This document shows, piece after piece, positions 6,804 to 61,037 of a DNA stretch of 64,000 nt. Numbering within the stretch: position 1 is the stretch's first letter; every line of letters begins with the position of its first letter. This stretch comes from Octopus bimaculoides (taxonomy: Eukaryota). The notes beneath the pieces were generated by a model, which was not told where the DNA came from, searched no databases, and saw only the letters and a list, made by a program, of their open reading frames with translations. The position numbers and the translations under genes are program-made. The stretch spans positions 45,718,409-45,782,408 of the forward strand of contig NC_068986.1 in NCBI RefSeq assembly GCF_001194135.2. The letters run 5' to 3'.

Positions 6804-6892
6804 TTAGGAAAGTGAAATATATCTCTCTAGCATCTGAACAGTTAGTAAAGCAAGAATTATTATTGAGAACATTGCATTCCGGCTTGCAGCGC
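6804..6892 (-). CDS. Terminal coding exon: (G)[31 protein letters not shown]-signal-like or short TM tail
   Basis: Acceptor ttttttttttcttttgtag; phase 1 matches B6; small residues G-A-A-S then ~16 hydrophobic residues; TAA at 6806-6804. Confidence 0.86.
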
Positions 6893-28300: not shown

Positions 28301-31300
28301 AAGTTGCCTTCAACAGCTACTGAGAATTTTTTCTGCTCCCAGATTCTACAAAACACCAATCTTGTCATTTTAAACTAACTGATTTTTTCATCATAGCAAT
28401 TCACATATCTAAGTGATTTTAATTTTAAATGCCTAACGTTCATATGAGACATCAGAATTAATGATCTGGTTTTGTGGGAGCTTTCTGGCATGGATATTTG
28501 TCTTTGATTGCTGTTTTGAGGGATCCTTACACAAACCCCAGAATCTTTTTCACAGTACGTTTTCATACACAATCCATTTTTCATCTCCAGTCACAAGTTG
28601 TTTCAAAAAATCATGCTTTCATTCCGTTTCAAAAGCATATCACAAATGGAATACTGGTCCAATTCTTTTCTGAGAGTTTGTGAGGAACCCATACATTGCA
28701 GTGAGAAATGTATTCTAGCTTCACTAGATGTTCATGAGCTGTACTTTTAGAAACTTCCAACTCCTCTGCAAGTTCTTTAGTCGTGATATTTGAGTTTTCT
28801 TTGATTTTTGCCTTCAAAACATCTTCCAATTTTGAAGGTCTTCCACTGTGACTGTCATCTTCCAAGCTATATTCTCCAGCTTTAAATTTTGCAAACCATC
28901 CTCAAACATTTGATTCACCTACAACATCATCCCCATAAACTTCACAATTGCTTTTGCAAGTTTTCGCAAAACTTTCTCCTTTTTTAAAACAGAAAAGCAT
29001 TACAACGCAAATATGAAATTTTTGGCTATCCATTTCAAATGTCAATAAAGGGTAACCAGAATGACAGATAAATCTATCTTTAGTCAGGAACAAAGAAGAG
29101 ATGCCCTACTACTTCAAGCAACACCAAAGCTTTAACTGTGTTACGTTTCAGGTGTGTTCAATGAGGTATTAAAAGATTTAGCTTAGAAATGCTCAGAACT
29201 TTCAGACAATTTAACATTTTAAGAACTTGAAGGTTGGTGACTTTGTCTTGCCAATAATGGAATTAATGATAACCACTTGAACAAATAGACCGCCCTGAAC
29301 TCTTATGAAAATTCTTCATTCACTTTCTGTTCTTTCTGACATTAAGGTATGTGATTTATATTATATCTTGGCTACTGTGTGGATTAAAATCTTTATTGAA
29401 AGATTACTAGTATATCATTGCAACTACTAAATTAAAGTCTACTAATTTAGATGGGTGAAATATTGTAATATCACTATGTTATAGTGGTTAGCTGCACCAA
29501 AGCTAACTATGTGGTTTACTGTAGATGTGATATTTGAATCTCATTGACAGTTTCACAACTTTTTCTGTCTTCTACATTAGATATATATAATGGAATATCC
29601 TGAACACTGTGTGAAGTGAGGTCCCTGTTGATAAGTAACTGGTATTCCATTGTAGTCACTTAATCTAAGTGTACTGATTTTGTTGTTCAAAAGTTGTGAT
29701 GTCACATTGATGTAGTGTTTAACTACAGCTATACTGTTTATAGTATATGAGGTATTCAGATCCTACAGATGTTACAAATTTTCCCATCTTCTATATTAGT
29801 TACATATTTTGTACTTGATGAAAAACAGAATGTTGATTATTAATAGGGGATGATTTGCTGTCTGTATTGAAATGTCATTAATATGTTTTGAGTTTTATTT
29901 ATTGAGAGATACATCATGTTGTCTAGAATTTATATAAAAAATAAACTGTATTATTTTGTGCTTCCTCTTACTTCATCTTTAAAAAAAAACTTGTGAGCAT
30001 ATTATTTGTATCTAATGTGAAAAAAATTAACTTTTAAATTGATATATTTGAAGAAGTGCTATGTAGGCTCAATATAACTAAAATTGTATGATTATTATGA
30101 TGTTTCCTGAATATTATTATAAAGTGAGTTCTCAAAACAGAGTGAGAGATTAGTGATTTATGGAAGTGAATGCAAGACATCAGTTACTCCATCATCAAAT
30201 AAAAAAAGTGAATTTTATTTAAATGCTTAGAAGCTTACCACATTTTAATTTCTTGTATTCTATTTCCATGTCGCTTGACATGTTGCAATTCCGTGTTTCT
30301 AATCTTGATTTATATGATTTCAATTTACTAAAAAATATATTGCAATTAAAATAGAAATTTAAGATTTTATTTTACAAAAGATTAGAAGAAATAGTAATGC
30401 TGAGAACAAAGGACCTGACTGCATCTTCTGAATCTGACAAGTACTTGCCATGTAGTAGGTGTGATTCATACAACTGTACTTTCCCCCTAAATATTTGTGA
30501 CTTTGTGCCCATTCCAGAAGTTAAATATTGTTAATAGTGAATAGAAGTTATCAGTGAATAGAATAAGTGTGCACAAATAGGATTATTATAAAAGAATAGC
30601 AATGTAAATGTACCATTTCAACAATGTACCATTTCAAAAGAGGAAAATAATATCTTATATTCATTTAAAACTAAATAATTTTAGGCTACAATACATGGCA
30701 TAATTTCCTCCAGAAGATGTCATGTTCTTGCTGTATCAATTTTCAGAGAAGTGAGAATGAAATACCATCCACAACAGCATCAGGACAAAATTAAATACTG
30801 AATGTCTTTAGGTTTAGTGATCAATTATTTTTCTACTAATTGAAGCATACTACTGTTCTGATAAGCATAATTTAAGATTGATGGCAATATCCTGATGAAA
30901 TATTTAATATACTCAGATAATTATTTGATAAATTGAGGAACAAAAATTAATTCCTACAAACACTGTAGTTAGTTTATCTGGAGAACTCTTCAACAAAAAG
31001 TAAACAGATTTCTTTAAGGAAAAAGTCCATGGATGAAATGCAATAACTGCCATTGAAAAATTGCACCATTATACAATTCATTGTAGAAATAAACTAGATT
31101 CGAAAGTTTTCTCACCACTGTAATTTCTCTATTCTCTTGAGGATTTTATCCTTAGTAGGAGGTGAATTGCAATTTTAGAACTTATATTCTTCTCAGTGGA
31201 ACATAAAAATATTTGTAATCATCTGTTAAAACATATCCATTGTATTGTGTCTCCAATTTAACTCTCCATGGTATTTTACACAACAAGGTAGATAGTAAAG

Positions 31301-37300: not shown

Positions 37301-37772
37301 TGAACCCAGAACGTAGAGACAGGAGAAATGCTGCAAAGTATTTTGTCAAATGCGTTATTGATTCTACCAGCTCGATATTTAATAACTGACTTTTTAGCAT
37401 ATACATATTGGTTTCGCTAATCCAGTATACCCAAATCTATTTTGTGTTTTTCCCCGTATTGGTTTGCTTTCATCATCAATCCAACAGTTACATGCACATA
37501 AAGCCCATCTCCATTGAACAACAACGATAAAGAACAGTGAACGAAAGAGAACAAATCCTTAAACAGTATTCATTAAACAATACGGCTGTACTTTTCTAAA
37601 TTTTGCTTTAAAAAAAAATGCTACTCACCGCAAGTATTTTCTTTGTAAGTTTTCTGCCATTCAGTTGGCATTCTACATGTCCCGTTAGTATAACTTCTTT
37701 TATTCAAAACACAATGATATTCGCTCATCAGATTCCTGATGGAGAGTAAAAGTATGACTAAGTGTTATATAT

Positions 37773-37832
<60 letters not shown>

Positions 37833-40188: not shown

Positions 40189-40225
<37 letters not shown>

Positions 40226-41076
40226 AAATAGTAAATGAGTATATGCATATATACGTACAGGTATGTGCATACCGACATCCACCTGTATGTATAGGTGCAT
40301 ATCTGGGTACAGGACATTGCAAACAAACGTAGACGAGAACACACGAGCCACATAGAGAACATTCTACTTCATCAGCTATATACATACATACATCTATCAT
40401 ATAGACGTATATATTTATCCAAACGCATATTTATTGTTTATTTGGAATAATCTTTAACAAAGGAAAAATTTTAGCTGAATTTTTATTGAACGACCACTGA
40501 GATTCATAAAATGTTTTGAAACATAAATCAGTTTGTTTTGATATGGAGGGATTTTTCGTTGGAGTAATATTAATAACCGTCTTAACTGTTGTATTCTGAC
40601 CATTTAACTAACAATACCAATAGCAATAAATGTCGATAGGTGCACGAAGTAATGACAGTAAATAAACAATCTCTTGATTCCTTTAAAACTGTTTGGCACA
40701 TATTTGAACCTGCAACTGCTTTTTACTGTAGTTTGCCAAAGAAAATTCCCGTTTAAGTTATATTGAATAATACAGTGATAAATATGCACTATGTTCTAAA
40801 AAAAAGTACAAAATCTTTAAATAGTATTCATGGATTTCTGATAAAGAAAGCAAATCTTCTCAGTTAGTTCAGTGTTGTCTCCTTGGTTTCTAATGCTGAA
40901 GAGAACTAAAGCGTTCGAAACACATCCCATAGAGGACGTTCTGAGCAGACAACGGTGTTCTTACGCCTTTTTTTTTTCATTTTATGCAAAGAATTTTCTC
41001 ATTGGAAAGCTGCAGTGAAAAGCTCTAATAGGATCGTGTATGTTTCAAAATATGTGAACTTATCTACAGTTTGTGT

Positions 41077-41129
<53 letters not shown>

Positions 41130-41177
41130 CACACACAACGGACATGCGCACGCACACACAAACACACACACACACAC

Positions 41178-41231
<54 letters not shown>

Positions 41232-42436: not shown

Positions 42437-42500
<64 letters not shown>

Positions 42501-45043
42501 GCTAATGCTGCTGTTACATAATTAATGAAACAAATAAGAATATATATGAGATCAAGAGTGAAAATACGTGATAGAGAGGAGAGAAGAAGCGAGAAGTAAG
42601 AGAGATGGTGGATTTTAAGCAACATACATTTCTTTGCATTGTTTTAAAATCTCTTTCCAGTTTAATGTAATTCTCATTCAATGTTATTCTTCGGTTGTAT
42701 TCCTTTTTCTTTTCACTAGGCTTACTCTCACCATAGAAAACGGAACCACAGAGGGTAACAACTTAGAGCTTGTATGCTCGAAGCTTTTCAACATTTTCAA
42801 AGAAATTAAAAACTTTGTTTAGAGTGGATATAAATGTATCAAAGAAGGATCTATGTACTCTACTTTAAGCAATTCCACTCAAGCCGATGTCACTTTCAGG
42901 AACGCAACTCGAAACAGTAATATCACTCTCTTTAATTCAGCAAAACCTAACTAAAGAAAGGAAAAGGGCACTAGAAACTATTAATAATTGATACTATTAT
43001 CATTTATATTTCTGACCACATGTTATTTAAATAATTGCATTATAATGAATAAATTGAATATTAGGGTCTGTGGTTGTTGTTGTTTGAACTAATTGTATCT
43101 CTGGTTATTGTAAATAAATATCTTTTTGTGAATTGTGTAATATATAAGATTTTATATAAATATCATAAATAATAATTGATCTTAATTGTTATATATAATT
43201 ATACGTGTTTGAGTATAAATATCTAAATTATATAAGGTGGTGCTCGAGTATTGTTACCAAAAGTATAAAGAAGAGAAATATAAGATAACACCATCTCTCA
43301 CACTCACATGCACGCATGTACATAACGTCGCCATTATTATGAGAAATCAAGTGTCCCAGATTTAAATTCTCTCATCTAGATTCGGTATAAAGAAATAGTC
43401 TGATGTCTTTTCGATATAAATCAGAAATAGTCTGTCTTTTCAGTTGACTATATCTCAGCGTTATAAATTTATGCTTTTTGTATCAATGCAAACTTCTCGT
43501 TTTCCCTTTTATCTACACGTATACAAAATATATTCATTTAGTTAGATATTTAAATATATTAATTCACTTACAGACAAACAGTGTCTTTTTCCGTATTTTT
43601 TGGTGCCGTATCACATGCAGCTACATCACTCGAGTTACAATCAATTTCTTAAAAAAATTAAGACCATAAAGAAAAGTATAAAATAAGGTAGACTTTAGTG
43701 GTATACTGAAATAATATAAGAGGAAATTTTAGAATTAGTAATAATTAGATATCTGCATATCGTAGCAAACACACAAATGCTCAATTAACAAGTGTTAAAA
43801 CGAAAAAAATTTCTAAGTGATAATAGTCAAATCATTCAAAATCAAGTTATTTCTAAAACTATTATATTGATCTCCGTATATTAGTCAAAAACAAAATGAA
43901 AATATACCAAGTGTTTTCTTTTTGATTTTAAAATAATAATTTATGATTTTATTTGAATGGTATACCACCCCGTTTTTTGAAGGCGCGTGGCCTAATAGTT
44001 AGGGCGTTGTAATCACGATAGTTAGATCGTGGTTTCAATTCATAGACTAGCCGGCGTTGTATTCTCGAGAAAATCAATTAATTTCCTGTCCACTCAGCTT
44101 TAAATAATAACCTTGTGACGGATTAGAGTACACGAGTGAGATGGTGACTCAGGAGAATCATCCGAACAGACGTCTTGAGGGCTTACCACGTCGAAGATTT
44201 TTTGATTGATTGATAAGTATAACTTTGAAAGCGTTAGATAAAAGAACTTACTAAGACAAACATCGGTGTAGTACTTGTCCAACAACTCAAAATGCTTGGT
44301 ACAGTCTTGTTGATATAAACAATGTTTCACATAGTTAAGGTCACTAAAAAAGTAAAGATATTTAAATTACCATTCAAAATTTTACATCAACAAAAAACAA
44401 AAGTAACATGTTTTATGTATTTCTAATCATACGTTATCGAATCACTAAGGTCTACATTTGTATGCTCTAAATGAAAGGTTCTCAACAGATAGAGGAGACA
44501 TATGCCCCCACCCACCCCGGGAGCTATTTGGAACTCGAAGGGGTGCCTTTTGGGGAAAGGGACACTAGGGAGGCGTTAAGAGACCTGGGGTGCGAGGTGG
44601 CACTGGAAGTTCCTCAACTTTAATAAGTTTAATTTGAAATTAATGAGTAGTAGCCATATTTTCACGTCTCCGCGACACTCAATTTTAAGAAAACCATGCC
44701 TTTTTGTTTCAAATTTCCAAAAACTTAAAAAATACTTTTTTCCCTTTGACGACACCAAGCAAATTCTAAAAACAGATGAATGGTGACAGACGACTAAAAG
44801 AGAAAAGTAATGAATAAAAGCGAAAAGCTGAATCTGTATGTATGTGTGTATTCATGTGCAAATATATAAAGAATTGTGGTCAGAACTTTGAATCAAACTG
44901 GCTTTTGGGAGTGGTTGATAAGTATGTATCGTGTATGTGTGTGTATGTATGGGTACGTTTGTATGTATATGATTGCGTGTATTACCATCTTGAATTCCTT
45001 TCTGCGATTGAACTTAAGTTGGGCTTGGATATGAAAGACCCAA

Positions 45044-45111
<68 letters not shown>

Positions 45112-45696
45112 NNNNNNNNNNNNNNNNNNNNNNNNNNNNNNNNNNNNNNNNNNNNNNNNNNNNNNNNNNNNNNNNNNNNNNNNNNNNNNNNNNNNNNNNN
45201 NNNNNNNNNNNNNNNNNNNNNNNNNNNNNNNNNNNNNNNNNNNNNNNNNNNNNNNNNNNNNNNNNNNNNNNNNNNNNNNNNNNNNNNNNNNNNNNNNNNN
45301 NNNNNNNNNNNNNNNNNNNNNNNNNNNNNNNNNNNNNNNNNNNNNNNNNNNNNNNNNNNNNNNNNNNNNNNNNNNNNNNNNNNNNNNNNNNNNNNNNNNN
45401 NNNNNNNNNNNNNNNNNNNNNNNNNNNNNNNNNNNNNNNNNNNNNNNNNNNNNNNNNNNNNNNNNNNNNNNNNNNNNNNNNNNNNNNNNNNNNNNNNNNN
45501 NNNNNNNNNNNNNNNNNNNNNNNNNNNNNNNNNNNNNNNNNNNNNNNNNNNNNNNNNNNNNNNNNNNNNNNNNNNNNNNNNNNNNNNNNNNNNNNNNNNN
45601 NNNNNNNNNNNNNNNNNNNNNNNNNNNNNNNNNNNNNNNNNNNNNNNNNNNNNNNNNNNNNNNNNNNNNNNNNNNNNNNNNNNNNNNNNNNNNNNN

Positions 45697-45756
<60 letters not shown>

Positions 45757-46703
45757 ACATATATATTGTGGGGGCATAATGGCCCAGTGGTTAGGGCGGT
45801 GAATTCGCGGTCTTAAAATTGCGGTTTCGATTCCCTGACCGAGCGTTGTGAGCGAAAACGCCTAAAGCTCCACGAAACTCCGGAAGGGGATGGTGACGAA
45901 CCCTGCTATACTCTTTCTCTCACTCTTTCTCCTTGTGTCTGTTGTACTTGTATTTCAAAGTGTCAGTCTTGTTACACTCTGTGTCACGCTGAATCTCCCC
46001 GAGAACTACGTTAATAGTACACATGTCTGTGAAGTTAATTTGACGAGCAGGCTGTTCTGTTGATTGGATCAACTGGAACCCTCATCGTTGTAACCAACGG
46101 AGTACCACTAAAAGAAAAAAAAGAACTATGTATATGAATGGGAGGAATTACGATGTAAGCACGTGCTAAAACCTCTCATACCTTCTTTATCTTTATGAAT
46201 TTTTACAAGTGTTTTTTTCGATTTTGTCATCGATTCTGTCTTCTGCATAATGGAATTGATACGATTATGCAACACCCCAACCAATTTTTTTTAATACGGA
46301 CAATCCGAATCTGCCATTCATTTCTCTTTATAATTTCCAAATAGTCTTTTAATACTTTTCTGGAAGAGAGTCAATTGACTGCCTTCACACTTATTTACAT
46401 AATCCTGGACTTTAAATGTAAAATGCCAGTGACATGCTGCATGTTTAGCAGACAGACAACCGTCCAGTGGTACGACATATAGTCCAAGTACACGAAAGCC
46501 TTCTTTTTAAGAGGAAACATGATGTTGGAAAAGTGGTGAAGAAGTTTGGGATAGTTGTGATTGTCTTAACCGACGGTGTGCTAGTTTTTTTATGTGCATG
46601 TGCATTAATAAGGATATAATTAAAACAATTGGTATACACCCACGTATATATACATAGATACATACATACGTACATACATACATGCATAAACACACACACA
46701 CAC

Positions 46704-46750
<47 letters not shown>

Positions 46751-48593
46751 AATATCAGAAAATCAATATTAGAAAATTCTTCAGAAAGATATATACGTGT
46801 GTAAAATAATTGTTTTATTAAAATATAAATATATATGAATATATGTAAATATGTATAAGTATAAATATACAATAATAAATATGAGAGTTTAAAAGTTTTG
46901 AATTAAGTTTTTAAAGCATCTTACGATTGTTTCGTTGAAGTGTTGTCCCTATAATGGAATCCTATATTGATAAGCATTTAGAGAGAGCTCTTCTGCTCTT
47001 CAGAGATATAAAATTTGAAATTTGTATAATTTATCGAATGGAATATAAGACAATATAATGTATTTTATACATAATTATTATGGATTACTACAGAAGAATT
47101 ACCAAGGAGGCATATATGAATTTCAAGATTCTCATACTAAAGTGTACTTACCAAAATCAAAAGCAGTAATTTTTAATTTATATTTCAAACAAACACCATT
47201 TTCCCATATTATTTCATATTAAAAAAAAAAACTGCCATTCGTTAAATTATACAAATTTCACATTTGATATTTCTGAGGAGCAGAAAAGTTATCTATAAAT
47301 GCTTATCAATATAGGATTTCATTATAGGAACAGCACTTCTGCCAAACGATCGTACGATGCTTTAAAAACTTAATTCAAAACTTTTAAACTGTCATATTTA
47401 TTATTATATATTTATACTTATACATATTTACATATATTTATATATACTCTTTTACTCTTTTATTGTCTAAGTCTATGAACTATAATTGGAATACAGGACA
47501 ATATAATGGATTTTACACATAATTATTATGGATTATTACAGAAGACTTACCAAGGAAGCATATATGGATTTAAAGACTCTCATACTAAAGTGTACTTACC
47601 AAAATCAACAGCAGTAATTTTTAATTTTTAATTTATATTTCAAACAAACACCATTTTACCATATTACTTCATATTAAAAAAAAAAAACTACCATTCGATA
47701 AATTGCACAAATTTCATATTTTATATATCTGAAGAGCAGAAGAATTGTCTATAAATGCTTATCAATATAGGATTCCATTATAGGAACAGCACTTCTGCCA
47801 AACGATCGTACGATGCTTTAAAAACTTAATTCAAAACTTTTAAACTGTCATATTTATTATTATATATTTATACTTATACATATTTACATATATTTATATA
47901 TACTCTTTTACTCTTTTACTCTTTTACTTGTTTCAGTCTTTTGACTGTGGCCATGCTGGAGCACCGCCTTTAGTCGAGCAAATCGACCCCAGGACTTATT
48001 CTTTGGAAGCCTAGTACTTATTCTATCGGTTTTTTTTGCCGAACCGCTAAGTTACAGGGACGTAAACACAACACTATCGATTGTCAAGCGATGTTGGGGG
48101 GACAAACACATACACAAACACATATATATATATACATATATACGACGGGATTCTTTTCAGTTTCCGCCTACCAAATCCACTCACAAGGCTTGGGTCGACC
48201 CAAGGCTATAGTAGAAGACACTTGCCCAAGATGCCACGTAGTGTGACTGAACCCGGAACCATGTGGTTGGTAAGCAAGCTATCTTTAATACAACAATTAT
48301 TTTACACACGTATATATCTTTCTGAAAATTTTTCTAATATTGATTTCCTGATATTAATAATAATATATTATAACATATATATATATATAATCGCTCGTAT
48401 TAAATACATAAACACTATAAAAGTATTAATACTTTGATACAATAGAGCACTCAATATAAATTGAGTATATAATATTCTCANNNNNNNNNNAATCACCGAA
48501 CCTCGAGCTTAACTATGGTCTATCCGTAGCACTTACTCAGCATTACCTGAAACCTCTGGGTCTAATTGACACCACTACCGCTCATAACCCCTG

Positions 48594-48631
<38 letters not shown>

Positions 48632-50215
48632 TATACATATAAAACAAAGCCTAATGGTGAGAATTTAAAAAAACTTTAGGGGCAAATGGTTTTCACTATG
48701 AATTTCAATTTAATCGGAATCTACACGATCTGAAGTATATTTGTAGAAAAGAAATATTTTAATTTTCTCGAGGTTATGAAGAAGCAAATATTCATATATA
48801 CGCAAAGATGTATATAAAACTAACTCTGTATGTATGTGCATGTGTGTATATTCGTATGCTTCTGTATGCGTTTATATATGTATATGTGTAAGTTTCAGAA
48901 GATGTTAGAATAATGGAATAAAAGTAAGTCATAATAAAAGATCTCCCAAAAACTACTGTTTCTGGCACAGATATTTACGCAATTTTGATTTTGAAGCATT
49001 TAAAAAATTATTTGGAAATTATAAAGAGAAACAAATGGTAGATTCGGACTGTCCGTATTTTAAAACCACGAATTTAAAAAAAGATTGTGAGTGTGTCAAA
49101 TTCTTTCTCCAGAAGTTTATGGTTTCACAGGAATAAGCGTGGAAAACTGCATCAATATAACCAATTTTCGGATTTTTTTACTTCCTTTTAAAAAATGCAA
49201 ATTTTGTGAATGAAACAAACTAGATCCTGAATAAGAAATGAATGTTTAATATGACAAATTTTCAGAATATTTTACGTCATTTTAAAAGAGAGCTGATTTT
49301 GTGACACAAACTAACTAGATCCAAGTATAGTAAATACCATCCACCACAATTTTCTACTCATATGAAGTACATATGTATTTCAACAATTTCTATCAAATAC
49401 ACTTTCTTTCTTGAGCATAAAATGTCCTCTTCCCGAGTGACTACTTATATGTCAGATTGTTGCACAAGTTCTAGCCGCTTTGATAAGGGAAATCGGAAAG
49501 CTTTGAAATGATTTCATTAGCATTTACTTGTACCAAAGAGAACCTTTTCGATAGACAACACGTTGATTTCATAAGTGTTGCGTAGTGTAAATAAATGCAA
49601 TTACCAAACTTTCAATTTATTATTTGTTTTTTTTTTATTGCTTCTCAGTTTCTACATCTGTACTCCCGATTGCGTACAAGCGCATATGTAAAACGACGTC
49701 CTATATTTTTTAAATCAATATCTACTGATATCAAAATAAGTGATATATTTTAAAATAAAACATTTTCTAGGGGGTGGAGGGCATTTGTGACTCTAAGGGT
49801 CAAAAGCTGGCGTTTGGCCAAAATGGGTTGAGAATCTTTGCTTTAAATAAATTCTAAATTATACATTCCTATATAATTATATTCTTTTCTACTCTAAGCA
49901 CAAGGTACGAAATTTTTGGGGAGGGGCCCAGTCGGTTAGATCGACCTAGTATGTAACTGGTACTTAATTTATCGACCCCGAAAGGATGAAAGGCAAAGTC
50001 GATTTTGGCGGAATTTGAACTCAGAACGTAAAGACAGACGAAATACCGTTAATCATTTCGCCCGGCGTGCTAACGTTTCTGCCAATTCGCCGCTTTCCTA
50101 TATAATTATATTAACACAGATACCCATCACATGTACATACATACATACACATACATGCATACATACATGCATACATACATGCATACATACATACATACAT
50201 ACATACATACGTACG

Positions 50216-50256
<41 letters not shown>

Positions 50257-53149
50257 GCACCAGACCAGATGACTACATCCATGGCCAAACCTTCGATCCT
50301 ATTATTGTATGAAATCAGAAGAGGAAGTTATCGAGCGTAATATCCAACAGAGAGTATCAAAAACAGTAATAAAAGTGTCTAGACTCAAAATCCCGACCTC
50401 TGCTGTGGTTGAAAAGAGTCCTTGAAAACATAGAATATACTCTAAAGAAGACGCGCTATTCTAGTCGCCTTCAACTGTACCAATAAAAGGCTTTGTACTA
50501 CGATCTTCTTACACCTAATCAACGCATTCAAATCTCTCAAAGCGCAAGCAACGCAAACTCGGTCACCATATGAAGTTTTAATAGAGACCAAATCTGTATC
50601 TCAAATACTTGAATTCCTCGGTGGCGAGAGAAAATATTTCAGCCATGATCAGTTTTGATTTACACCAAAGTCAATAAAACCGTAATTGTATTACTACTGA
50701 CGTATTTGAAGCGGAGCTGTTGTTACACACACCTTAGATAACTTCTAGAAAGACTAGTCAACGAGGCGAGGGAAGCTCTATGTTGTTGCTTGATCTATCA
50801 GAAATAACAGCCAGTTTCTCTCAATTCACATCCTGCTGTCTTAAGAAAAAGGCGGACATATTGGCATTGTATACACAGGCATTGTATACACAAACACATA
50901 CACGCGCACACACACACACACACACACACGCACGCATCCCCCCACAAACAGATACATACACACACACATTCATATCTGCAAGGATGGATCAAAAGAATAT
51001 TAAAGAATATCATTCTACCTTTAATCGATCCACCCTGAAACTATCTTATTCTACTTCACCCAACTTCGAATCTATTGTAGTAGCCTCTAATAAGCAAAAG
51101 CTCATTCTTTACTATCAAAACTCACATAACTACAACACACACACAACTCCAGCACAGATACCCTTATATTAGACCACAACCACAACCCAACCCATCCTAC
51201 TGACACTGCCCCGGGACACCACCACAATCTCTACCACCCTTACAAATAGTGCAATTAATAACAACAATAGTAATAATAGCAATGTTGGTAATGATAACGG
51301 TAATAATACTAATAATATAGAATTTTCTACCCCTTTCTATAACCTCTCCTCTGACGATACTACCTCCTCTATTACTGAGCACACTCCCCAAAATTCACCT
51401 AATTGTAATTGCCGTCTCCCCATTACAGATGGAACCATCTGCCCGTTACAAACCCATTGCAAAAGATATAATGTAATTTACAAATGCACTGTCCTTTATC
51501 TATTACACAACTCTACAGCCATATACATAGGATCAACCAAACATTTTAAGCAACGATATGCCGCTCACTTCCATTCTTTTAGATACGATAAACATAGTAA
51601 ATCTACAACACTTGCTAACCAGATACATCATCTCAAAAATACAAATATACCCTATACTCTATCATGGTCAATACTGGACTCAGGACTTCCCTACCGAGGT
51701 CAACGCTCAACTCTCCAGCACTGCTAAATAAACATAATGAGGCACTAAGCACATGCATAGAACAAAGATGCAGTGTGTTTATCAGAAAATGGCTAGGTCT
51801 TCCAAAACTGCTGAATACAACTGCACTATGTGGAAAGCCCGTGATGAAACTACCGATAACATCAATCGTCGAAGACTATGAGGCAGGAAATAGGTGAGGA
51901 CGCTAATGATGCTAAGGTGTATTCGAAAGATCAGAACATCCGAGAAAATCCTCCAGAGGTAGGAATAGGGAAGAAATGGAAAGCGGAAGAAGCAGTAAAT
52001 AGTGCGATCAGAAAGCGACGGTGAGATATGTTCTGTCAAACTGCAGGCTAGCATTAGACAAATATACATGACGTCACAACCAAGTTCTCGGTGTCATAAG
52101 TGCACCACTCAAGGGGGAAATCGAGAGATAGAATAGGGGTGAGAACCTAAAAGTGAAAAAACGCTGAAGAATATACTTCAAGAAGGTAAAAGGATATAAG
52201 ACTAGGCCTTCAAAAAAAGTATACGAGACAGATGAAATAGGGAAAGGATACTGGGAGCTGGCCGCGGATTTGGAAAGATTATTAATATGTCCACTCATAA
52301 AATCAACAAAAAGACCAGACTTAATCTTATGGAATACAGACCGGAAAATTGGAATTTTACTATAACTGGCAGTGCCGTGGGAAGAGAACATCTCTAATGC
52401 AGAGCAACGGAAAGAGAGGAGGTATGGAAAATTAATCGAAGAGTGCGGGGAACAGGGGTGGACTGTCGAGTATTACCACCTGGCAGTGGGGCTAGAGGCT
52501 TCATTGAAAGGAAAATAGTAATGTTATTTAAAAGAAGATTTGCATTTTTAAAGCACAGAACTGAGAAAAGTAATAAAGAAGATACAGGAGGCAGTCAACA
52601 GGGCCAGCTTCTATATATGGCTGAAACGAAAAGACACGAAATGGTTCGAAAGCCATACTATGCCGACTGAGAGATAGCGTCGCCAGGTGAGACTGGCTGG
52701 TATTTACACAGCGTTGCTGCTTGACGGCTGGGCCGAGGGAACCATCTCGTTCATTGCGCGCCTTTCCCCTCCTTTAGTCAGTAGACTGCGCCACGTGACA
52801 GTCAGTCGATGCGGGCTGTTGAAGCTCAGATTGTGACAGTTACCTGGCGCTAGTTGTCGGAGCCTACCGGCGAGTATATAAAGGGCAATTGGCAAGGTGG
52901 TCATTTGCCCGCTGACATTCGTTGACGTTGCATGGAAGACGATGCGATCAAAGAAAAACCATGCAGCCTATGGAGCTTTCCAAATGGCACACCTAAACAA
53001 ATATTACTTCGATACTTTTTTGTCATTATGAAGCATATCTCACATAGCCCATTTCTCGAGAGGGGTGCCCATGCTTGATATAGATCCACAATATCCTATT
53101 TACTCGGCTTGTATTGGACGTATCATTGGCAAATTCCAGAGTGAGAGAG

Positions 53150-53241
<92 letters not shown>

Positions 53242-55876
53242 GGGAGGGAGAGAACGAGAGAGGGAGAGAAGTCACTAGTGCTTCCTTTTGAATAAGGCAG
53301 AGACATGGAGGAGGAAAGCAACTGAGAACGAAGAGAAACTCCCTAGAAAATAGTAAAAATGAATTCATGTTACATAATTACAATATTAGGTATAGCTGCA
53401 GGCGGTTTCGTGAGATGTCCGCATGGATAACAATAAAAGCATGATTATACCCAAATGAATCCAAACGTTCCTTGATAGCATCAATGTTACTTGGCATATT
53501 AGAGGCAGCGGTATTGTCGGAAGGTACCGAAAACCATATAATTTCCAAATGACAGTGTCCTATAGCGTAAGCTAAGGAAAAATATGTGTTATGTTTATAT
53601 AGGAGTAAGTACTATTCTTGTTTAGTCTCAGATCATCTCATAGTGCTTTCCTATCTAAAGTATTGGGTCATTCCATAAATAATGCGGTTTTTTCAATTGC
53701 ATGAACTAGAAGTCGGAGGGGGAGGGATAAACTACTTGCATCAACTTGCTATAAAAATTGGTAGTAATTTTACCTTGTGCTTATTCTTAGTGCAAATTTT
53801 GAAGAGTGTTGTTCGATTTTAACAGTTATTTTTTCAAAGCTATAATGGAAGTGACAAAGGAGCATATTCGGCATATTTTGCTTTATGAGCTCAATAAAGG
53901 CAACAACGCAACGGAAAGCGTGAGGAATATTAATGCATATGTGGGGATCGGACAATAAGCGTAAGTCAGTGTCAACGGTGGTTCCAGAAATTAGGCCTCG
54001 CCCTAGAAGATCTGTAGAGCTCGACGAGGACGTCTTGCAAACTCTGGTGGAACAAAATTCCATCGTAACTGTTGAGGAACTAGTAGAGAAGGTTGGATTT
54101 GCTCATTCAGTCATTCATCGACACCTGCAAATTGAGTCAACGGGTTCCTCACAAACTTTCCGTGTCTAATCGCGCGCAGAGAGTGAATGTCTGCTCTTCT
54201 TTGCTGTCACGTCTCACGAATGAAACTTCTTTTTAGACCGAATAGTGTCTGGTGACAAGAAATGGTTTCACTATAAAAATGTCAAGCGCTGAAGACAGTA
54301 ATTAGGGAAAGGAGAAACACTGGCATCCCAGGCTAAAGAAGTTGGTGTTATCTGTTTGGTGAGAAAAAAAAAAACGTTTAGTCTACTTTGAACTTTTAAA
54401 CTCAAACCAAACGATAACAAAGGAGATCTGCTGCGAGCAGCTTGAGCGGATTAAGTCAGTGCTAGAAGAAAAGCGACTATCTTTAGTTTCAAGAGTATTC
54501 TTCCATCAGGATAATGCTCGGCCACATACAGTGAAGATGACATTCCAAAGGTTAGAGCAGCTTTAATGGGAAACGATGCCCTACCCACCATATTCATCAG
54601 ACATTGCCCCATCTGATTATCATTCATTCTGCAGTCTTTAAATACATTTGGACGGAAAAAGATATGAATTCTGTAGACGAGGTCAGAACAGTACTGGAAG
54701 AGTATGTTTCGTCACAGACAAGTGAATTTTGGAAGAGAGGCCTTGCAAGTCTACCAGATAGATGGAAGAGCATTGTTGAAAATGAGGGAGAGTATGTTTT
54801 AGATTAAAAAAGAACTTTGTTTATCTTAATTCTGAAAAATAAAAGATGCATAAAAAAGCGCGTTATTTATGGGATGACCCAATAGTTTTGTCTATGTGTT
54901 CTGAATACTTTCGTTTATGTATCGCTAACTATTTGAGACTGATGATATCTGACTTATGTATCAATATTATTTTTTTTATCGTATTCATATCTTCCATCTG
55001 ACTATTTGAATTCACACACATTAAATACATCCAGTAGGGGTTACGTATCACTAGATACTCGATTTTCACATTCAGATAAAAGCGTATAAGAGAATTCTCA
55101 TCGCATAGGTGCAACATTTTTAGTTCATTCTTACAATGTATTTCTACTAATTCTTTTCGTGTTTTATAGAACAATTGTGATATAATTGTGATAACAAATC
55201 ACGTAGGCTGAACTATTGTTAATGGTTTTGACTGTGATCTCTTCGTTACGTTATTTTGAGAGCAGCTAGTTCAATATCATCTTAACTTACATGAAATACA
55301 TGACATGGAAATGCATGACAATTCGGATATTGTATCTAATCTTACCTGCATGAATTTAACTTTGAACTTCTACAAATCTGAATGTTACTTGTTTTACAAT
55401 CTTTGGCTTCCTCCTCTATAAAGATAACAAAAAATAAAAGCAATGTCATAATTTGAAAGTATAGCCGTTACGTTCGTAATTATATAAATGCGCACGTTTC
55501 GATTCGAAAACTGATGAAAGGGATCTTATTTCATCAGAACTATGTTCCAGCACACAAGTCTTTACTCTCAATGGCTGCTATGCGTGACTGACTTTGAACT
55601 GGTTGATCACCTTCCCTATTCTCTTGATTTGTCCTCATCTAACTATCATCTATTACCCAGCATGAACAAACACTTGACTAGGAACCAGTGTTGCAGAGCT
55701 GATAACGTCATATCTGCTGATCAACAGGACGAAACTTCTTCACTAATGGGTTCCAAACACTGCAACACCAATGAAAGAAGTGCGTGAACCAAAAGAGGGA
55801 CTATGTAGAAAAATAAGCCTCATTTGGTCACATTCCATGAGAGTATCTTGATCAGCCTATAGACGTTTCAACTACC

Positions 55877-55933
<57 letters not shown>

Positions 55934-58900: not shown

Positions 58901-61037
58901 TCTCAAACTTCACAGTCCTCTTCTAAGATTCTTCAGTATCAATTTTTCTTCGTTGAAATGCATCTAGGAAATGTAGTGAGTGAATGTTTACCTACGAGTT
59001 TGTTTATTCTAACAGTTTGCTCATCACATGGTCCTGAGGGTCTTTATATTGCAGTATCCCATTTACGGATAAAAACCATAATCAATAGATACCGTTGTCA
59101 AACCTGAGATGTATTCACGTATTCATATAGTTATTGAATATTTTAAAAAGCTAGCTAATGCTGTGGTGGTTCGCTGCAAACTTATTCTGAAGGAACAAAC
59201 TATTTCTATTTGTTCCTCAATTTTGTGAGGCTTCGTAGTACGTTCGTAGCACTAGTGGTAACAACCGACTCTGACATCTAAATTCACAGTAGGACAAGCT
59301 TATAAATAGCAACTATTATCTTTATTGAAAAATGAAGAGGACTGTATAATTTCTTTTCTTCTTCCTTGTTTCTCAGGGCAGGTGTATATATACTGATAAA
59401 AAGGCAAAAATACAAGGGAATTTAAAAACCATTCGCTTACACTTAAAAACTAGATTAATTCCATGGATCTGATTTTCTCTCCCGATCTTCCTTGAAAAAC
59501 GTGTGGCCATCGCCTAGTTCACAAGGTTTAATCATCTATACTAATCTTGCCCTACCAGTTTTATAGTTACGAGGTCTGATTTCTTGAAAAGACTTGTTCT
59601 GTTGCCTCTGTCAAATGAAGTATGCATGTTCTATGCATAACAAATGAGTGCTTCCTTTGTTTTTCCTTCCGTTTAATCTTGTCCACAAAAACTAGGCTAA
59701 CTACTTGCCTTGATCAGCTGGCTATTTGTTATTTTTGTGATTTCTGCTGCTGTAGTTTGTTGTTTGGCCTCAGGCCTAGCCTCATCAATACTTTTTAGAT
59801 AATAATTCGAATTGGTTGCTAGTCAAGCAGTTAAGTGACCACGTAATGGCTTCTCCATTGACTCGTTAGTTTGAAGAACAGCTAACGTTTCGAACGTTTT
59901 TGACAGTCCTTTGTGCTACTAATGAGCATTAACAATTCTAAAGAAACTTTCACATTAGTCACCAGAATACACCTAACTTCGTTTCTGCTATGGGGTACAG
60001 CGAAGAGAGACTGCACAACCACACGCAGCGGTATGCAGGTCCAAAACTATGACTTCCAGTTTTGATATCACCTGTCGTCATGCTCTTTTTCTATCATAAT
60101 GGATCTTTATCGGGGTGGCGGGAGAGGAGTACTCAGAATTTTGTCCGTTAAGAATAACACTCGATAACTCCTACTCTCGTGGTCATAAAGGCTAGACTCA
60201 ACAATATTTTTGAACTCGTTATTTCTTTTACCTCAATAGAAGTTGATGTCCATTTTGTTACTTTCATCAAACCAGCATGACGAAATAGTTTTGGCATTCA
60301 GATATGAGCAGTTTCTTATTTTCAGTTGTTTTACATCTGTTGGATTGCCTCTTTTGGACAGCCTATTGAAATGGTTTAGTAGATTGTGTTAACTGATGCA
60401 CGCTATGTTTTCTCGGTAGCATAGATGAGAGATGGTGGAGACCAAATGTGTATGACTTCCTGTCAAATACGTATTCTCAACCCATCAGAGATTCTATACC
60501 TTCTAGAGTCCACATGATTATCAGTAAATAGCATATATATCTTCAGTGTAAGTTGTAAAATATCAAAATATAAGGGAAAATATCCGGAGTGTGGTGCTTA
60601 AGATAACTTGATAGATCGTTTGTTTTTCTTCGGGTTGTTACCTCAACTAATAGTATTAAATGTTGCATCCTGACATTAATTCAGTCAACCCAAAGTTTCT
60701 TGAATTGGGATCTCAGTATCAAGTTGACCACGATTTCTATACATCGCGCTTGGATTCATTCATTGTTTAGTCACAAAACAAGTATACACCAATCTATGTG
60801 GGTGCGCATGTGTGTTTATTTTGTGTTTCTGCACGGTTTTTTGTACTTTATTTTTTAGCTTCCTGCGTATTTTTGTATGATTCTGTATTTTCTGTGTTTT
60901 CATTAGATTTTGTTTTTATTTTTCATTGTTTATGTTTATATTTGCTTATACTTACTGGCAATCTGTCTTGGCATAATCGTCTAGACTGTTTCGGCAGTCT
61001 CTGAAGTTTTCTTGATTCAAAAGTATGTTAACGCCAC
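6804..61037 (-). CDS. Spliced gene, 5'-incomplete: secreted/cell-surface protein with six tandem 6-Cys modules and a C-terminal GPI/TM-like hydrophobic tail; join of 13 exons, 1100 nt, ~366 aa
   Basis: 13 minus-strand exons with GT/AG ends. Phases alternate 1-2/2-1 and join with no stop codon. C3-x8 spacing is kept across every A/B junction. 32 Cys (even number); 5 N-x-S/T sequons (NSS, NGT, NNT, NMS, NST). Confidence 0.88.
7810..7892 (-). CDS. Exon B6 (phase 2-1): [27 protein letters not shown]
   Basis: Acceptor ttttcttttctcgctcttcctag, donor tg|gtaagt; 83 nt; inside ORF-track entry 7802..8014. Confidence 0.9.
8830..9770 (-). mobile_element. L1/Tx1-like ORF1 remnant with a degenerate zinc knuckle
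   Basis: [26 protein letters not shown] resembles VVVEGRxxxCxxCxxxxHxxxxCP; [13 protein letters not shown]. Confidence 0.45.
9980..11198 (-). mobile_element. Five head-to-tail SINE-B copies (9980-10146, 10157-10367, 10470-10676, 10755-10951, 10982-11198) separated by (AAT)n
   Basis: Minus-strand tRNA-like head (tggcagaatcgttagc ... gagttcaaatt) and central gcctttcatcctttcggggtcgataaa..agtaccag motif in each copy. Confidence 0.9.
11317..11838. mobile_element. Unclassified ~540-bp interspersed repeat (family D), copy 1, flanked by (AAT)n
   Basis: Aligns along its length with 13304-13850. Confidence 0.8.
11855..12069 (-). mobile_element. SINE family B
   Basis: Same head and core as the cluster copies. 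Confidence 0.88.
12080..12505 (+). mobile_element. R4/Dong-clade non-LTR retrotransposon 3' end (restriction-like endonuclease plus 3'UTR), (AAT)n tail
   Basis: [50 protein letters not shown], i.e. PD..D RLE motif; ends aaaactactg(aat)n. Confidence 0.8.
12572..12905. other. Assembly gap; other gaps at 17748-17873, 21242-21251, 35235-35244, 45112-45696, 48481-48490, 61147-61693
   Basis: N runs, mostly flanked by microsatellites. Confidence 1.
12906..13177 (+). mobile_element. Second R4/Dong 3'-end copy, 5' side cut by assembly gap
   Basis: Closely similar to 12238-12505; [39 protein letters not shown]. Confidence 0.8.
13304..13850. mobile_element. Family D repeat, copy 2, flanked by (AAT)n
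   Basis: aatgccctgatgcagtacc ... gcatgcactgctttctcactc(aat)n. Confidence 0.8.
14123..14747. mobile_element. MITE with GGATC termini, 8-bp TSD (TCTAAAGA), nested inner inverted repeat and (TAACCC)n/(GGGTTA)n core; Merlin-like by termini (inference)
   Basis: TIR ggatcttttttaaaacgggg(g)ccacatttttcattaa at both ends; TSD at 14115-14122 and 14748-14755. Confidence 0.85.
15398..15694. mobile_element. hAT-type MITE, 297 bp
   Basis: TIR caggggttttcaaa / tttgaaaacccctg; perfect 8-bp TSD gtctatat at 15390-15397 and 15695-15702. Confidence 0.92.
15856..15940 (-). CDS. Exon A6 (phase 1-2): [27 protein letters not shown]
   Basis: Acceptor tttctttattttttgcttttgcag, donor gg|gtaaat; 85 nt. Confidence 0.9.
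16381..16900 (+). mobile_element. Penelope-like element: GIY-YIG C-terminus and 3' region
   Basis: [50 protein letters not shown]. Confidence 0.65.
17458..17747 (-). mobile_element. SINE family A, cut by gap
   Basis: Reverse complement of the family A body, including CORE-like ttgggcaagtgtcttctactatagcc. Confidence 0.88.
18413..18804 (+). mobile_element. SINE family C (tRNA head), full length
   Basis: A/B-box-like tggcccagtggttag / gtttcgattccc; 12-bp TSD tgtagagtaact at 18401-18412 and 18805-18816. Confidence 0.93.
19010..19350. mobile_element. Two SINE-B copies back to back (about 19010-19140 minus, 19170-19350 plus)
   Basis: gaaaggatgtaaagc..gaatttgaactcag followed by gactttacttgtcatcctttcggagtcaataaa. 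Confidence 0.75.
19537..19625 (-). CDS. Exon B5 (phase 2-1): [29 protein letters not shown]
   Basis: Acceptor ttgttttattactttacag, donor tg|gtaagt; 89 nt. Confidence 0.88.
20248..20555 (+). mobile_element. tRNA-head SINE related to family C but with a different 3' tail
   Basis: tggcctaatggttagagcagcggactcg..gttcgaatctc head; tail ..ggctcgagaaggaacaaacaacaac. Confidence 0.8.
20980..21600. repeat. Two diverged direct copies (20980-21241, 21369-21600) with a 10-N gap between them
   Basis: taat.cccact.ctggaatgacctgatcttc ... ataaacag repeated. Confidence 0.85.
22365..22505 (-). mobile_element. SINE family A, 5' part
   Basis: gggcttctttcagtttccg..aagacacttgctcaagg. Confidence 0.8.
22850..23300 (+). 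mobile_element. Two tandem SINE-B copies ending in (ATT)n
   Basis: gcggcgagctggcagaatc..gagttcaaattccgccgagg..ctttcatcctttcggggttgattaaataagcaccag..agtagaaaggattatt, twice. Confidence 0.88.
23801..24188 (+). mobile_element. SINE family C, full length
   Basis: Closely similar to 18413-18804; 9-bp TSD cacttcaac. Confidence 0.93.
24625..25065 (+). mobile_element. SINE family A, diverged
   Basis: ttggtaaatgccttctactttagcc..gtaacttagtggtttggcaaaagag..caatgactaaaacaag. Confidence 0.78.
25450..26080 (-). mobile_element. Degenerate RTE-like RT remnant
   Basis: [15 protein letters not shown] resembles ESKGLRVNxxKTKVL; heavily decayed. Confidence 0.4.
26335..26416 (-). CDS. Exon A5 (phase 1-2): [26 protein letters not shown]
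   Basis: Acceptor ttctacattctttttgtcag, weaker donor aa|gtgtgt; 82 nt. Confidence 0.83.
27816..29214 (-). mobile_element. Mariner element, defective, carrying a 217-bp foreign insert
   Basis: TIRs ttaggttgtctggaaagttccgagcattt / aaatgctcagaactttcagacaatttaa; TA on the left; [28 protein letters not shown]. Confidence 0.9.
28236..28452 (+). repeat. Exact 217-bp copy of 27040-27256
   Basis: Base-by-base identity from ttttatgattagtg to gagacat. Confidence 0.95.
30239..30327 (-). CDS. Exon B4 (phase 2-1): [29 protein letters not shown]
   Basis: Acceptor atattttttag, donor tg|gtaagc; 89 nt; Arg at C4 position. Confidence 0.85.
31760..32270 (-). mobile_element. CR1/L2-group LINE 3' remnant
   Basis: [33 protein letters not shown], the post-RT region typical of CR1-group elements. 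Confidence 0.7.
32736..32802 (-). CDS. Exon A4 (phase 1-2): [21 protein letters not shown]
   Basis: Acceptor ccattccaatcacag, donor ga|gtaagt; 67 nt; has C1 and C3, lacks C2. Confidence 0.83.
33285..33488 (+). mobile_element. Short interspersed repeat ending ctggggctaaacaacagcaa; related tail at 29-51
   Basis: Shared tail motif ctggggctaaa. Confidence 0.45.
34967..35512. mobile_element. Second copy of the GGATC/telomere-core MITE, opposite orientation, 8-bp TSD GAAAACTG
   Basis: TSD at 34959-34966 and 35513-35520; arms are reverse complements of copy 1; core lost in a 10-N gap. Confidence 0.88.
35868..37069 (-). mobile_element. Tc1/mariner element of maT/DD37D type, defective
   Basis: cagggtg...caccctg ends flanked by TA; [40 protein letters not shown]. 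Confidence 0.75.
37170..37378 (-). mobile_element. SINE family B
   Basis: ttttggcataaggccagcaattttg..gaatttgaacccagaacgtag. Confidence 0.85.
37629..37735 (-). CDS. Exon B3 (phase 2-1): [35 protein letters not shown]
   Basis: Acceptor cttttactctccatcag, donor cg|gtgagt; 107 nt. Confidence 0.88.
37838..38004. repeat. Long near-perfect inverted repeat (~70-bp arms, 14-nt loop)
   Basis: aacaacgcgaggacgtgatacagatattgtgttactggacgctc / gagcgtccagtaacacaatatccgtatcacgtcctcgcgttgtt. Confidence 0.92.
38607..40149 (+). mobile_element. Non-autonomous Helitron with N-terminal repeat ORF fragment (39746 onward) and nested SINE
   Basis: 5' a|TC in (TA)n; 3' hairpin ccgtcc-aat-ggacgg (40120-40134) then CTAG|t; [15 protein letters not shown] repeats as in Helitron ORF N-termini. 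Confidence 0.78.
39094..39476 (+). mobile_element. SINE family C inserted in the Helitron
   Basis: Closely similar to 18413-18804. Confidence 0.93.
41530..42100 (+). repeat. Degenerate GT-rich low-complexity tract
   Basis: Cryptic (TG)n variants. Confidence 0.85.
42437..42500. repeat. (CTA)n microsatellite
   Basis: Direct inspection. Confidence 0.95.
43572..43647 (-). CDS. Exon A3 (phase 1-2): [24 protein letters not shown]
   Basis: Acceptor cttaatttttttaag, donor ct|gtaagt; 76 nt. Confidence 0.87.
44252..44343 (-). CDS. Exon B2 (phase 2-1): [30 protein letters not shown]
   Basis: Acceptor atctttacttttttag, donor a|gtaagt; 92 nt; lies inside ORF-track entry 44100..44330. Confidence 0.9.
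45768..46107 (+). mobile_element. SINE family C, diverged
   Basis: ggggcataatggcccagtggttagggcgg..ggaaccctcatcgttgtaaccaacggagtacc. Confidence 0.88.
46831..47900. mobile_element. AT-rich foldback element (arms about 46831-47041 / 47235-47445) with its middle and right arm duplicated in tandem (47495-47897)
   Basis: aaaagttttgaattaagtttttaaagcatc is the reverse complement of gatgctttaaaaacttaattcaaaactttt, which occurs twice. Confidence 0.85.
47905..48285 (-). mobile_element. SINE family A, near full length
   Basis: (ctctttta)n tail, ggagcaccgcctttagtcgagc..gacacttgcccaagatgccacg..gaaccatgtggttgg. Confidence 0.92.
49888..50097 (-). mobile_element. SINE family B
   Basis: atcgaccccgaaaggatgaaaggcaaagtcg..gctaacgtttctgccaattcgccgctt. 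Confidence 0.9.
51160..51756 (+). mobile_element. Penelope-like element GIY-YIG endonuclease remnant
   Basis: [68 protein letters not shown]. Confidence 0.85.
51757..52680 (+). mobile_element. 5'-truncated RLE-type LINE (HERO-like), post-RT region and endonuclease
   Basis: [30 protein letters not shown]; [49 protein letters not shown]. Confidence 0.8.
53138..53268. repeat. (GA)n microsatellite
   Basis: Direct inspection. Confidence 0.95.
53663..54882 (+). mobile_element. Full-length mariner element with frameshifted transposase (ATG 53845)
   Basis: TIRs ttgggtcattccataaataa / ttatttatgggatgacccaa with TA both sides; [34 protein letters not shown]. Confidence 0.93.
55346..55415 (-). CDS. 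Exon A2 (phase 1-2): [22 protein letters not shown]
   Basis: Acceptor ttttattttttgttatctttatag, donor ag|gtaaga; 70 nt. Confidence 0.88.
55560..55880 (+). mobile_element. Mariner 3' fragment
   Basis: [22 protein letters not shown]; ends ccctcg|ta. Confidence 0.8.
55945..56260 (-). mobile_element. SINE family A
   Basis: ttacttgtgtcagtcatt..gctaagttacggggac..cactcaaaaggctttggtcggc. Confidence 0.85.
56275..56492. mobile_element. Mariner-derived MITE, 218 bp
   Basis: TIRs cgagaggatgctgaaaggttcctggcttt / aaagccaggaacttttcagcacatcctcg; TA flanks. Confidence 0.9.
56600..57700 (-). mobile_element. Penelope-like element remnant (GIY-YIG C-terminus and upstream ORF)
   Basis: [46 protein letters not shown]. 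Confidence 0.7.
58464..58552 (-). CDS. Exon B1 (phase 2-1): [29 protein letters not shown]
   Basis: Acceptor aatcttttacag, donor a|gtgagt; 89 nt; has C4 and C6, Gly at C5 position. Confidence 0.85.
59480..60560 (-). mobile_element. Degenerate RTE/BovB-like RT remnant
   Basis: MLFTDN (LFADD-like), [13 protein letters not shown] remnants in the expected order. Confidence 0.5.
60956..61037 (-). CDS. Exon A1 (phase 1-2): [27 protein letters not shown]
   Basis: Acceptor ttgttgttagttgtag, donor ca|gtaagt; 82 nt; has C2 and C3, lacks C1. Confidence 0.82.

Follow-up and report, generated by a model that had tools for sequence, protein, structure and literature searches.

Candidate 1-5, 2-4, 3-6 disulfide pairing in the six-cysteine modules of an uncharacterised octopus gene

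Kazal domains and beta-defensins carry six cysteines in a 1-5, 2-4, 3-6 topology, and the same pairing is found in crustacean hyperglycaemic hormone (CHH)/ITP, which is all-helical and also has six cysteines; this topology is therefore compatible with a helical fold. The conotoxins and the snake three-finger toxins and PLA2 combine a hypervariable mature region with a signal peptide and cysteine framework that are conserved, and their exons diverge faster than their introns. More generally, hypervariable surfaces on an invariant disulfide scaffold are seen in families of toxins, immune proteins and gamete-recognition proteins. GFRα and GAS1 act as receptors in development and are conserved. 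The GFRα co-receptors are glycosylphosphatidylinositol (GPI)-anchored, helical and disulfide-rich, and GFRAL contains a local disulfide, C252-C258 (PMC8266384). The gene compared here with these systems lies on the minus strand of the window, the 64,000 nucleotide (nt) stretch of the Octopus bimaculoides genome that was analysed (assembly GCF_001194135.2, NC_068986.1, positions 45,718,409 to 45,782,408), where eight short exons running from 61037 (61043 with an alternative acceptor) to 30239 encode four cysteine-rich modules of two exons each. All positions given below are those of the window.

The original prediction for this DNA gave the end points 61037 and 30239, where exon A1 begins and exon B4 ends, respectively. 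The gene was found to extend further, to 6804, and to include modules 5 and 6, with six cysteines each, and a hydrophobic tail exon, so that exons 2-9 of a 14-exon gene had originally been recognised. The spliced product was 100% identical to O. bimaculoides protein XP_014788326.1 (LOC106882236, UniProt A0A0L8FN98, 385 amino acids (aa)), the spliced exons corresponding to residues 18/20-385 with no mismatch, and the module gene is thus not a chance pattern. It is a real gene with an existing RefSeq model, and is uncharacterised; literature searches returned no match to the locus or accession. In the protein, a signal peptide is followed by six modules of ~55 residues in tandem, and then by a hydrophobic segment at the C-terminus that is a putative anchor. 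The two additional complete modules, the tail and the UniRef label of the protein, 'GDNF/GAS1 domain-containing protein', were absent from the original prediction.

Cysteine framework and pairing of the modules

The module framework is C1-x6/7-C2-x7..15-C3-x8-C4-x5-C5-x14-C6, and two of the modules are reduced. Module 1 is encoded by exon A1 (exon 2 of the gene; coordinates 60956-61043, or from 61037 as first predicted), which carries C2 and C3, and exon B1 (58464-58552), which carries C4 and C6. It reads C2-x11-C3-x8-C4-x5-Gly-x14-C6, with a GGA codon for the Gly at 58512-58510, and no Cys was found 6-8 residues ahead of C2, confirming the earlier claim of a missing C1 and of a Gly exactly at the C5 position in this module. 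Module 4, encoded by exons A4 (32736-32802) and B4 (30239-30327), reads Cys-x7-Phe-x9-C3-x8-Arg-x5-C5-x14-C6, with the N-terminal Cys at 32794-32792, the Phe codon TTC at 32770-32768 and the Arg codon AGA at 30305-30303. The Arg is located exactly at the C4 position, as had been stated, but the companion claim that module 4 lacks C2 holds in only one of two alignment readings; the N-terminal Cys was placed in the C1 column by L-INS-i, and in the C2 column by default MAFFT and by hmmalign. C3 and C6 were lost in no module, again in line with the original prediction. The robust part of the observation is that each reduced module lost one of C1 and C2 and one of C4 and C5, and kept C3 and C6.

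A profile search run exhaustively over 1.84 billion representatives, together with an indexed search, identified a family of only seven octopod proteins, made up of one protein from Argonauta hians and three paralogs each from O. bimaculoides and O. sinensis, which share a single chromosome in either species. The profile search contributed just two more of the octopus paralogs to this family. The number of cysteines per module, 4-6-6-4-6-6, was identical in 7/7 of these homologs, and is even in every module of all seven. When five homologs were compared, 32/32 Cys columns were invariant, compared with 100 of the 349 other columns (29%). Both reduced modules are present in all seven octopod proteins, indicating two ancient events (n=2) and not repeated ones.

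A full-length AlphaFold 2 (AF2) model, built from five sequences, was all-alpha with a predicted local distance difference test (pLDDT) score of 55, while a model of module 2, for which 29 modules served as the alignment, gave a pLDDT of 78.3 and a predicted template modelling score of 0.53 and contained no strands. The helices in the module 2 model span residues 9-15, 23-35 and 39-52. C1 is two residues ahead of helix 1 and C2 is at its end, helix 2 starts with C3 and has C4 one turn short of its end, C5 is in the turn, and C6 directly follows helix 3. Searches of Pfam with the spliced protein at E<=10 found no match to GDNF, Kazal (Kazal_1, Kazal_2), defensin or CHH families, those with all homologs likewise gave nothing of relevance, and a sequence profile search of the PDB gave 0 matches. 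Foldseek searches of the PDB retrieved only generic helical repeats with the full-length model, which is of low confidence, and only generic TPR-like helical hairpins with E>0.8 with the single-module model. The fold as modelled is helical and belongs to no recognised family.

Applying ideal helix distances to the AF2 helices places C3 and C4 14 Å apart within one helix, C5 and C6 on either side of a 14-residue helix, C4 and C6 at opposite ends of the hairpin, and C3 and C6 adjacent to one another where the hairpin opens. On this geometry, the C2, C3, C4 and C6 of module 1 would pair comfortably in one way only, C2-C4 with C3-C6, and those of module 4 likewise only as the N-terminal Cys with C5, again with C3-C6. 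The loss of one cysteine from C1 and C2 together with one from C4 and C5 is predicted by the clean loss of a cross-bridge from the N-terminal helix to the turn, and the opposite loss pattern would be expected if C1-C2 or C4-C5 formed local bridges. If the N-terminal Cys of module 4 is C1, the pairing C1-C5, C2-C4, C3-C6 requires no re-pairing at all. This pairing, which had been put forward in the original prediction, is the best single hypothesis and the most parsimonious one, and is unproven, with a probability that we place at roughly 0.55; its parsimony was upheld, but two ancient events are its basis and it hinges on a single choice of alignment.

Under this hypothesis, each module would comprise a short helix bearing C1 and C2 followed by a helical hairpin, the open end of which would be stapled by C3-C6 in every module. 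The N-terminal helix would be held to the turn end by two further bridges, the simplest choice being C2-C4 and C1-C5. Module 1 would have lost the C1-C5 bridge and module 4 the other cross-bridge, both before the divergence of the octopod paralogs and Argonauta, and neither loss would have left a free thiol.

Several points weigh against the C1-C5, C2-C4, C3-C6 pairing. There are only two loss events, both of them ancient, and counting shows that two random pair losses are compatible (disjoint or identical) in 7/15 cases, hence the agreement between the two losses is weak evidence. The full-length model is of low confidence at pLDDT 55, and module 2 has better defined helices than modules 1 and 4. 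The N-terminal Cys of module 4 was also assigned to C2 in 2/3 alignments, and the K-P-x-L loop of module 4 lines up with the K-x-P-L loop that follows C2 in module 6. If this Cys is C2, the lost sets become C1 with C5 in one module and C1 with C4 in the other, which clash, and at least one module must have re-paired. A crossed arrangement, C1-C4, C2-C5 and C3-C6, would accommodate that assignment, with module 4 keeping C2 and cleanly losing the C1-C4 bridge, for example by an 8-codon deletion of 'C1-x7', and with the widowed C2 and C4 of module 1 re-paired. Besides the C2 column chosen by default MAFFT and hmmalign, it can draw on exon A4 being the shortest A exon (67 nt) and on the K..P.L motif after the module 4 Cys, which matches the C2-C3 loop of module 6. 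However, the crossed arrangement requires one disulfide re-pairing, and the module 4 Cys is 3 residues past the exon border, as is C1 in modules 3 and 6. Judging from the model, the C2-C3 loop of module 2, at 6-7 residues, would also be stretched further by a C2-C5 bridge than by a C2-C4 bridge, and overall the crossed arrangement appears unlikely.

Local bridges of the GDNF/GAS1 type, one within C4-x5-C5 and one between C1 and C2, are a poorer prospect again, as two independent re-pairings of widowed cysteines would be required in the reduced modules and the clean losses expected, of C1 with C2 or of C4 with C5, were not seen. Such bridges are suggested by the UniRef name, by the C252-C258 disulfide of GFRAL, which is a C-x5-C in a group of GPI-anchored helical receptors (PMC8266384), and by the best HHalign match, itself insignificant, which sets C4-x5-C5 on a C-x5-C of GFRα1 D2. 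They are at odds with the position of C1 and C2, which flank a predicted helix ~12 Å long, and with the lack of a Pfam GDNF match in eight proteins, HHalign probabilities of <1% and the lack of any GFRα among the Foldseek matches. Paired loss would say nothing about the wiring if some of the cysteines took part in intermodule bridges or metal binding or were free thiols. The full-length model is too poor to show how the modules pack, and such roles seem very improbable given the even Cys count in every module of the seven homologs, the lack of an odd Cys in the first or last module, and a signal peptide and conserved N-glycosylation sequon that point to an oxidising secretory route.

Divergence of the ectodomain and the putative anchor

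Evolutionary rates were compared between O. bimaculoides and O. sinensis, with both orthologous coding sequences reconstructed exactly. The twelve ectodomain exons share 78.9% nt identity, with nonsynonymous (dN) and synonymous (dS) divergence of 0.25 and 0.29, respectively, and a dN/dS of 0.86 (0.96 when Cys codons are left out). The introns of the same gene share 85% identity in a crude global alignment of 200-nt flanks and 85-93% in near full-length BLAST alignments, indicating that the ectodomain exons diverge faster than the introns surrounding them. The proportion of nonsynonymous differences (pN) in the ectodomain was 0.209, against a proportion of differences (p) of 0.10-0.15 in the introns, for which z was estimated by hand at ~4-7. 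In contrast to the ectodomain dS of 0.29, dS was 0.03 for the signal and tail; exon 1 is 90% identical and the tail exon 97.8% identical in DNA between the two species, and 0/32 cysteines have changed. The other two ortholog pairs share 81% and 61% protein identity. Gene conversion from the known paralogs was considered as a cause of the fast exon divergence and is not supported, as no sign of it was seen in an exon by exon comparison.

Judged from these sequences, purifying selection on the Cys scaffold is strict, whereas the ectodomain outside it is diverging very fast, and this combination strongly supports selection against free thiols. The earlier suggestion of such selection, and of a functional protein, was supported by the invariance of 32/32 cysteines, the even counts, and an open reading frame (ORF) and splice sites that are intact. 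A hypervariable surface on an invariant scaffold suggests a recognition role under diversifying selection, and a surface recognition or binding protein would fit better than a conserved developmental co-receptor.

The last coding exon (6804..6892, minus strand) encodes G-A-A-S and, after it, a hydrophobic tail ending at the stop codon, an arrangement resembling a GPI signal. The end of the tail, ...VQMLE[KR]YISL, is nearly invariant across the paralogs and Argonauta. At 97.8% nt identity, the tail is far more conserved than is usual for a GPI signal, which weighs against that assignment, and the putative membrane anchor may be either GPI or a C-terminal transmembrane segment.

If the proposed wiring is true, the modules define a small helical type of disulfide module that is new and has no Pfam entry, and they provide a clean natural case in which whole bridges were lost. 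Perhaps more important than the wiring is the accelerated divergence, which makes the three-gene octopod family a candidate for a recognition or effector system shaped by diversifying selection; to our knowledge such systems are poorly known in cephalopods. The combined proposal, of an octopod-restricted, new all-alpha six-Cys domain that is not GDNF/GAS1, has the 1-5/2-4/3-6 wiring of Kazal domains and defensins and serves a hypervariable surface-recognition system, is tentative, and we consider it somewhat short of an even chance.

Gene structure, relatives and assembly

All eight exons in the 61037-30239 region are bounded by AG acceptors and GT(A/G)AGT-like donors. The A exons of this region are 67-82 nt long, with phase 1 entry and phase 2 exit, and the B exons are 89-107 nt long, with phase 2 entry and phase 1 exit; the intron within each module invariably falls one codon past C3. 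Symmetric phase-1 borders, a signal peptide and an even Cys count in each module are the hallmarks of an exon-shuffled extracellular repeat module, and all three were found. A1 is separated from B1 by an intron of 2403 nt, and A4 from B4 by one of 2408 nt, in agreement with the 2.4 kb separation reported earlier for the paired exons.

Exon 1 is located ~9.2 kb upstream of A1, outside the window, and codes for MISRMTFISLVAFLLFA followed by a G. Two in-frame AG acceptors, 6 nt apart, are present at 61037-61043 on the minus strand (ttag/TTGTAG/GT, where slashes mark the splice points). The RefSeq protein sequence implies use of the acceptor at 61043, giving the split codon G/TT for Val18, while the acceptor at 61037 chosen in the original prediction would give G/GT for Gly and remove Val-Val from the end of the signal peptide. 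It had been noted that the cysteine count of module 1 would change if the upstream exon supplied a T, making the first split codon Cys. As exon 1 ends in G, the codon before module 1 encodes Val or Gly and never Cys.

The remaining exons are all on the minus strand. Module 2 is encoded by exons A2 (55346..55415; C1, C2 and C3) and B2 (44252..44343; C4, C5 and C6), which are separated by an intron of 11,002 nt (44344..55345). Module 3 is encoded by exons A3 (43572..43647; C1, C2 and C3) and B3 (37629..37735), the latter with the spacing C4-x11-C5-x14-C6. Outside the region originally predicted, module 5 is encoded by exons A5 (26335..26416; C1, C2 and C3) and B5 (19537..19625; C4, C5 and C6), and module 6 by exons A6 (15856..15940), with C1, C2, C3 and the conserved N-S-T sequon, and B6 (7810..7892), with C4 and C5-x11-C6. 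A pattern search for the module spacing, which included the plus strand, returned only microsatellite (TG)n artefacts, and the modules proved too short and too divergent to be picked up by self-comparison using tblastx and blastp. The longer intronic ORFs had no Pfam match.

The only remote relative outside the octopods was an orphan sequence in EukProt, P0008 (g1403.t1; E = 2e-9), which has five repeats of the form C-x10-C-x15-C-x8-C-x3-C-x-C-x22-C-x5-C and a hydrophobic C-terminus, and shares the core C3-YY[KR]-x5-C4 with module 6. All repeats of P0008 have eight cysteines, hence P0008 shows no Cys losses.

Three N gaps lie inside the region of the eight exons, at 35235-35244 in the B3-A4 intron and at 45112-45696 and 48481-48490 in the 11,002-nt A2-B2 intron, and none of them touches an exon. 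The newer chromosome-level O. bimaculoides assembly has the same Ns at the gaps. The orthologous locus in O. sinensis is free of Ns, shares all 14 exons together with their phases and AG/GT sites, and translates exactly to its XP protein (P0002); the ORF and every splice site are intact in both species. When the 9.1-kb A2-B2 intron of O. sinensis was scanned, no module-like exon was found and only (TG)n artefacts were detected. As this gap-free ortholog has no extra exon, A2 and B2 are soundly paired despite the gaps in the intron between them, and no module is hidden there.

Further N gaps, at 61147-61693, 21242-21251, 17748-17873 and 12572-12905, are outside the eight-exon region and all intronic to the same gene. 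The introns also contain four plus-strand copies of an interspersed repeat resembling a short interspersed nuclear element (18460-18810, 23850-24300, 39140-39720 and 45810-46060), which are about 85-95% alike in translation. One repeat element occurs in two introns in opposite orientation, at 14136-14787 (+) and 34905-35528 (-), the copy at ~35.1-35.4 kb being arranged as an inverted duplication on either side of the N gap at 35235-35244. A direct duplication of 100% identity is present in the B4-A5 intron (27066-27179 and 28262-28375, plus strand), with the copies ~1.2 kb apart, and a cluster of direct and inverted repeats of ~450 nt occupies 46829-47903 in the A2-B2 intron.

Comparison with known systems

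Though the octopus protein is labelled 'GDNF/GAS1 domain-containing protein' in UniRef, its precomputed Pfam field is empty, and the name presumably derives from a SMART/InterPro match, which was not reproduced here. No match to GDNF/GAS1 (PF02351) was found at E<=10 in the eight family proteins. Alignment of family and module profiles using HHalign to the GFRα1 sequence, which was verified against 6q2n, gave a probability of <1% (0.2%). The ten-Cys framework of GFRα1 D2/D3, C-x6-C-x5-C-x10-C ... C-x-C, does not correspond to the octopus framework, and neither the low-confidence full-length model nor the single-module model retrieved the five-helix GFRα/GFRAL/GAS1 fold using Foldseek. Membership of the GDNF/GAS1 family was therefore rejected on the basis of the profile, HHalign, Cys framework and Foldseek results.

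The octopus protein and the GDNF/GAS1 proteins (GFRα1-4, GFRAL and GAS1; PF02351/SM00907) are alike in having extracellular, disulfide-rich tandem domains, predicted in the octopus case to be all-alpha, in their membrane tethering, which is GPI-like and putative in the octopus protein, and in a C-x5-C at a helix-turn-helix. However, the octopus module has six cysteines, three predicted helices and ~55 aa, whereas the GDNF/GAS1 domain has ten cysteines, five helices and ~90 aa, and includes a C-x-C motif that the octopus module lacks. The octopus family is also very fast evolving and known only from octopods, unlike GFRα and GAS1. At most, the octopus protein may work like a GDNF/GAS1 protein, as a tethered helical binding scaffold, without being a member, and GFRα-like signalling should not be deduced from the automatic label.

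The wiring proposed for the octopus module is that of Kazal domains and beta-defensins, but these have alpha/beta or beta folds and other Cys spacings. A Kazal domain was ruled out by the absence of a Kazal profile match at E<=10 and by a model that is all-alpha and not alpha/beta, and a beta-defensin by the absence of a Pfam match and the all-alpha prediction, which excludes both folds. The earlier suggestion that the fold may be independent of these two is thus supported by the all-alpha models and the lack of Pfam matches. CHH/ITP is a single-copy hormone of ~72 aa with a different Cys spacing, while the octopus protein is built from repeated modules with a putative membrane anchor. The conotoxins, three-finger toxins and PLA2 resemble the octopus family in their fixed Cys framework and in exon divergence that exceeds intron divergence, but they are small secreted toxins, whereas the octopus protein is a six-module protein of 385 aa that is probably membrane-anchored.

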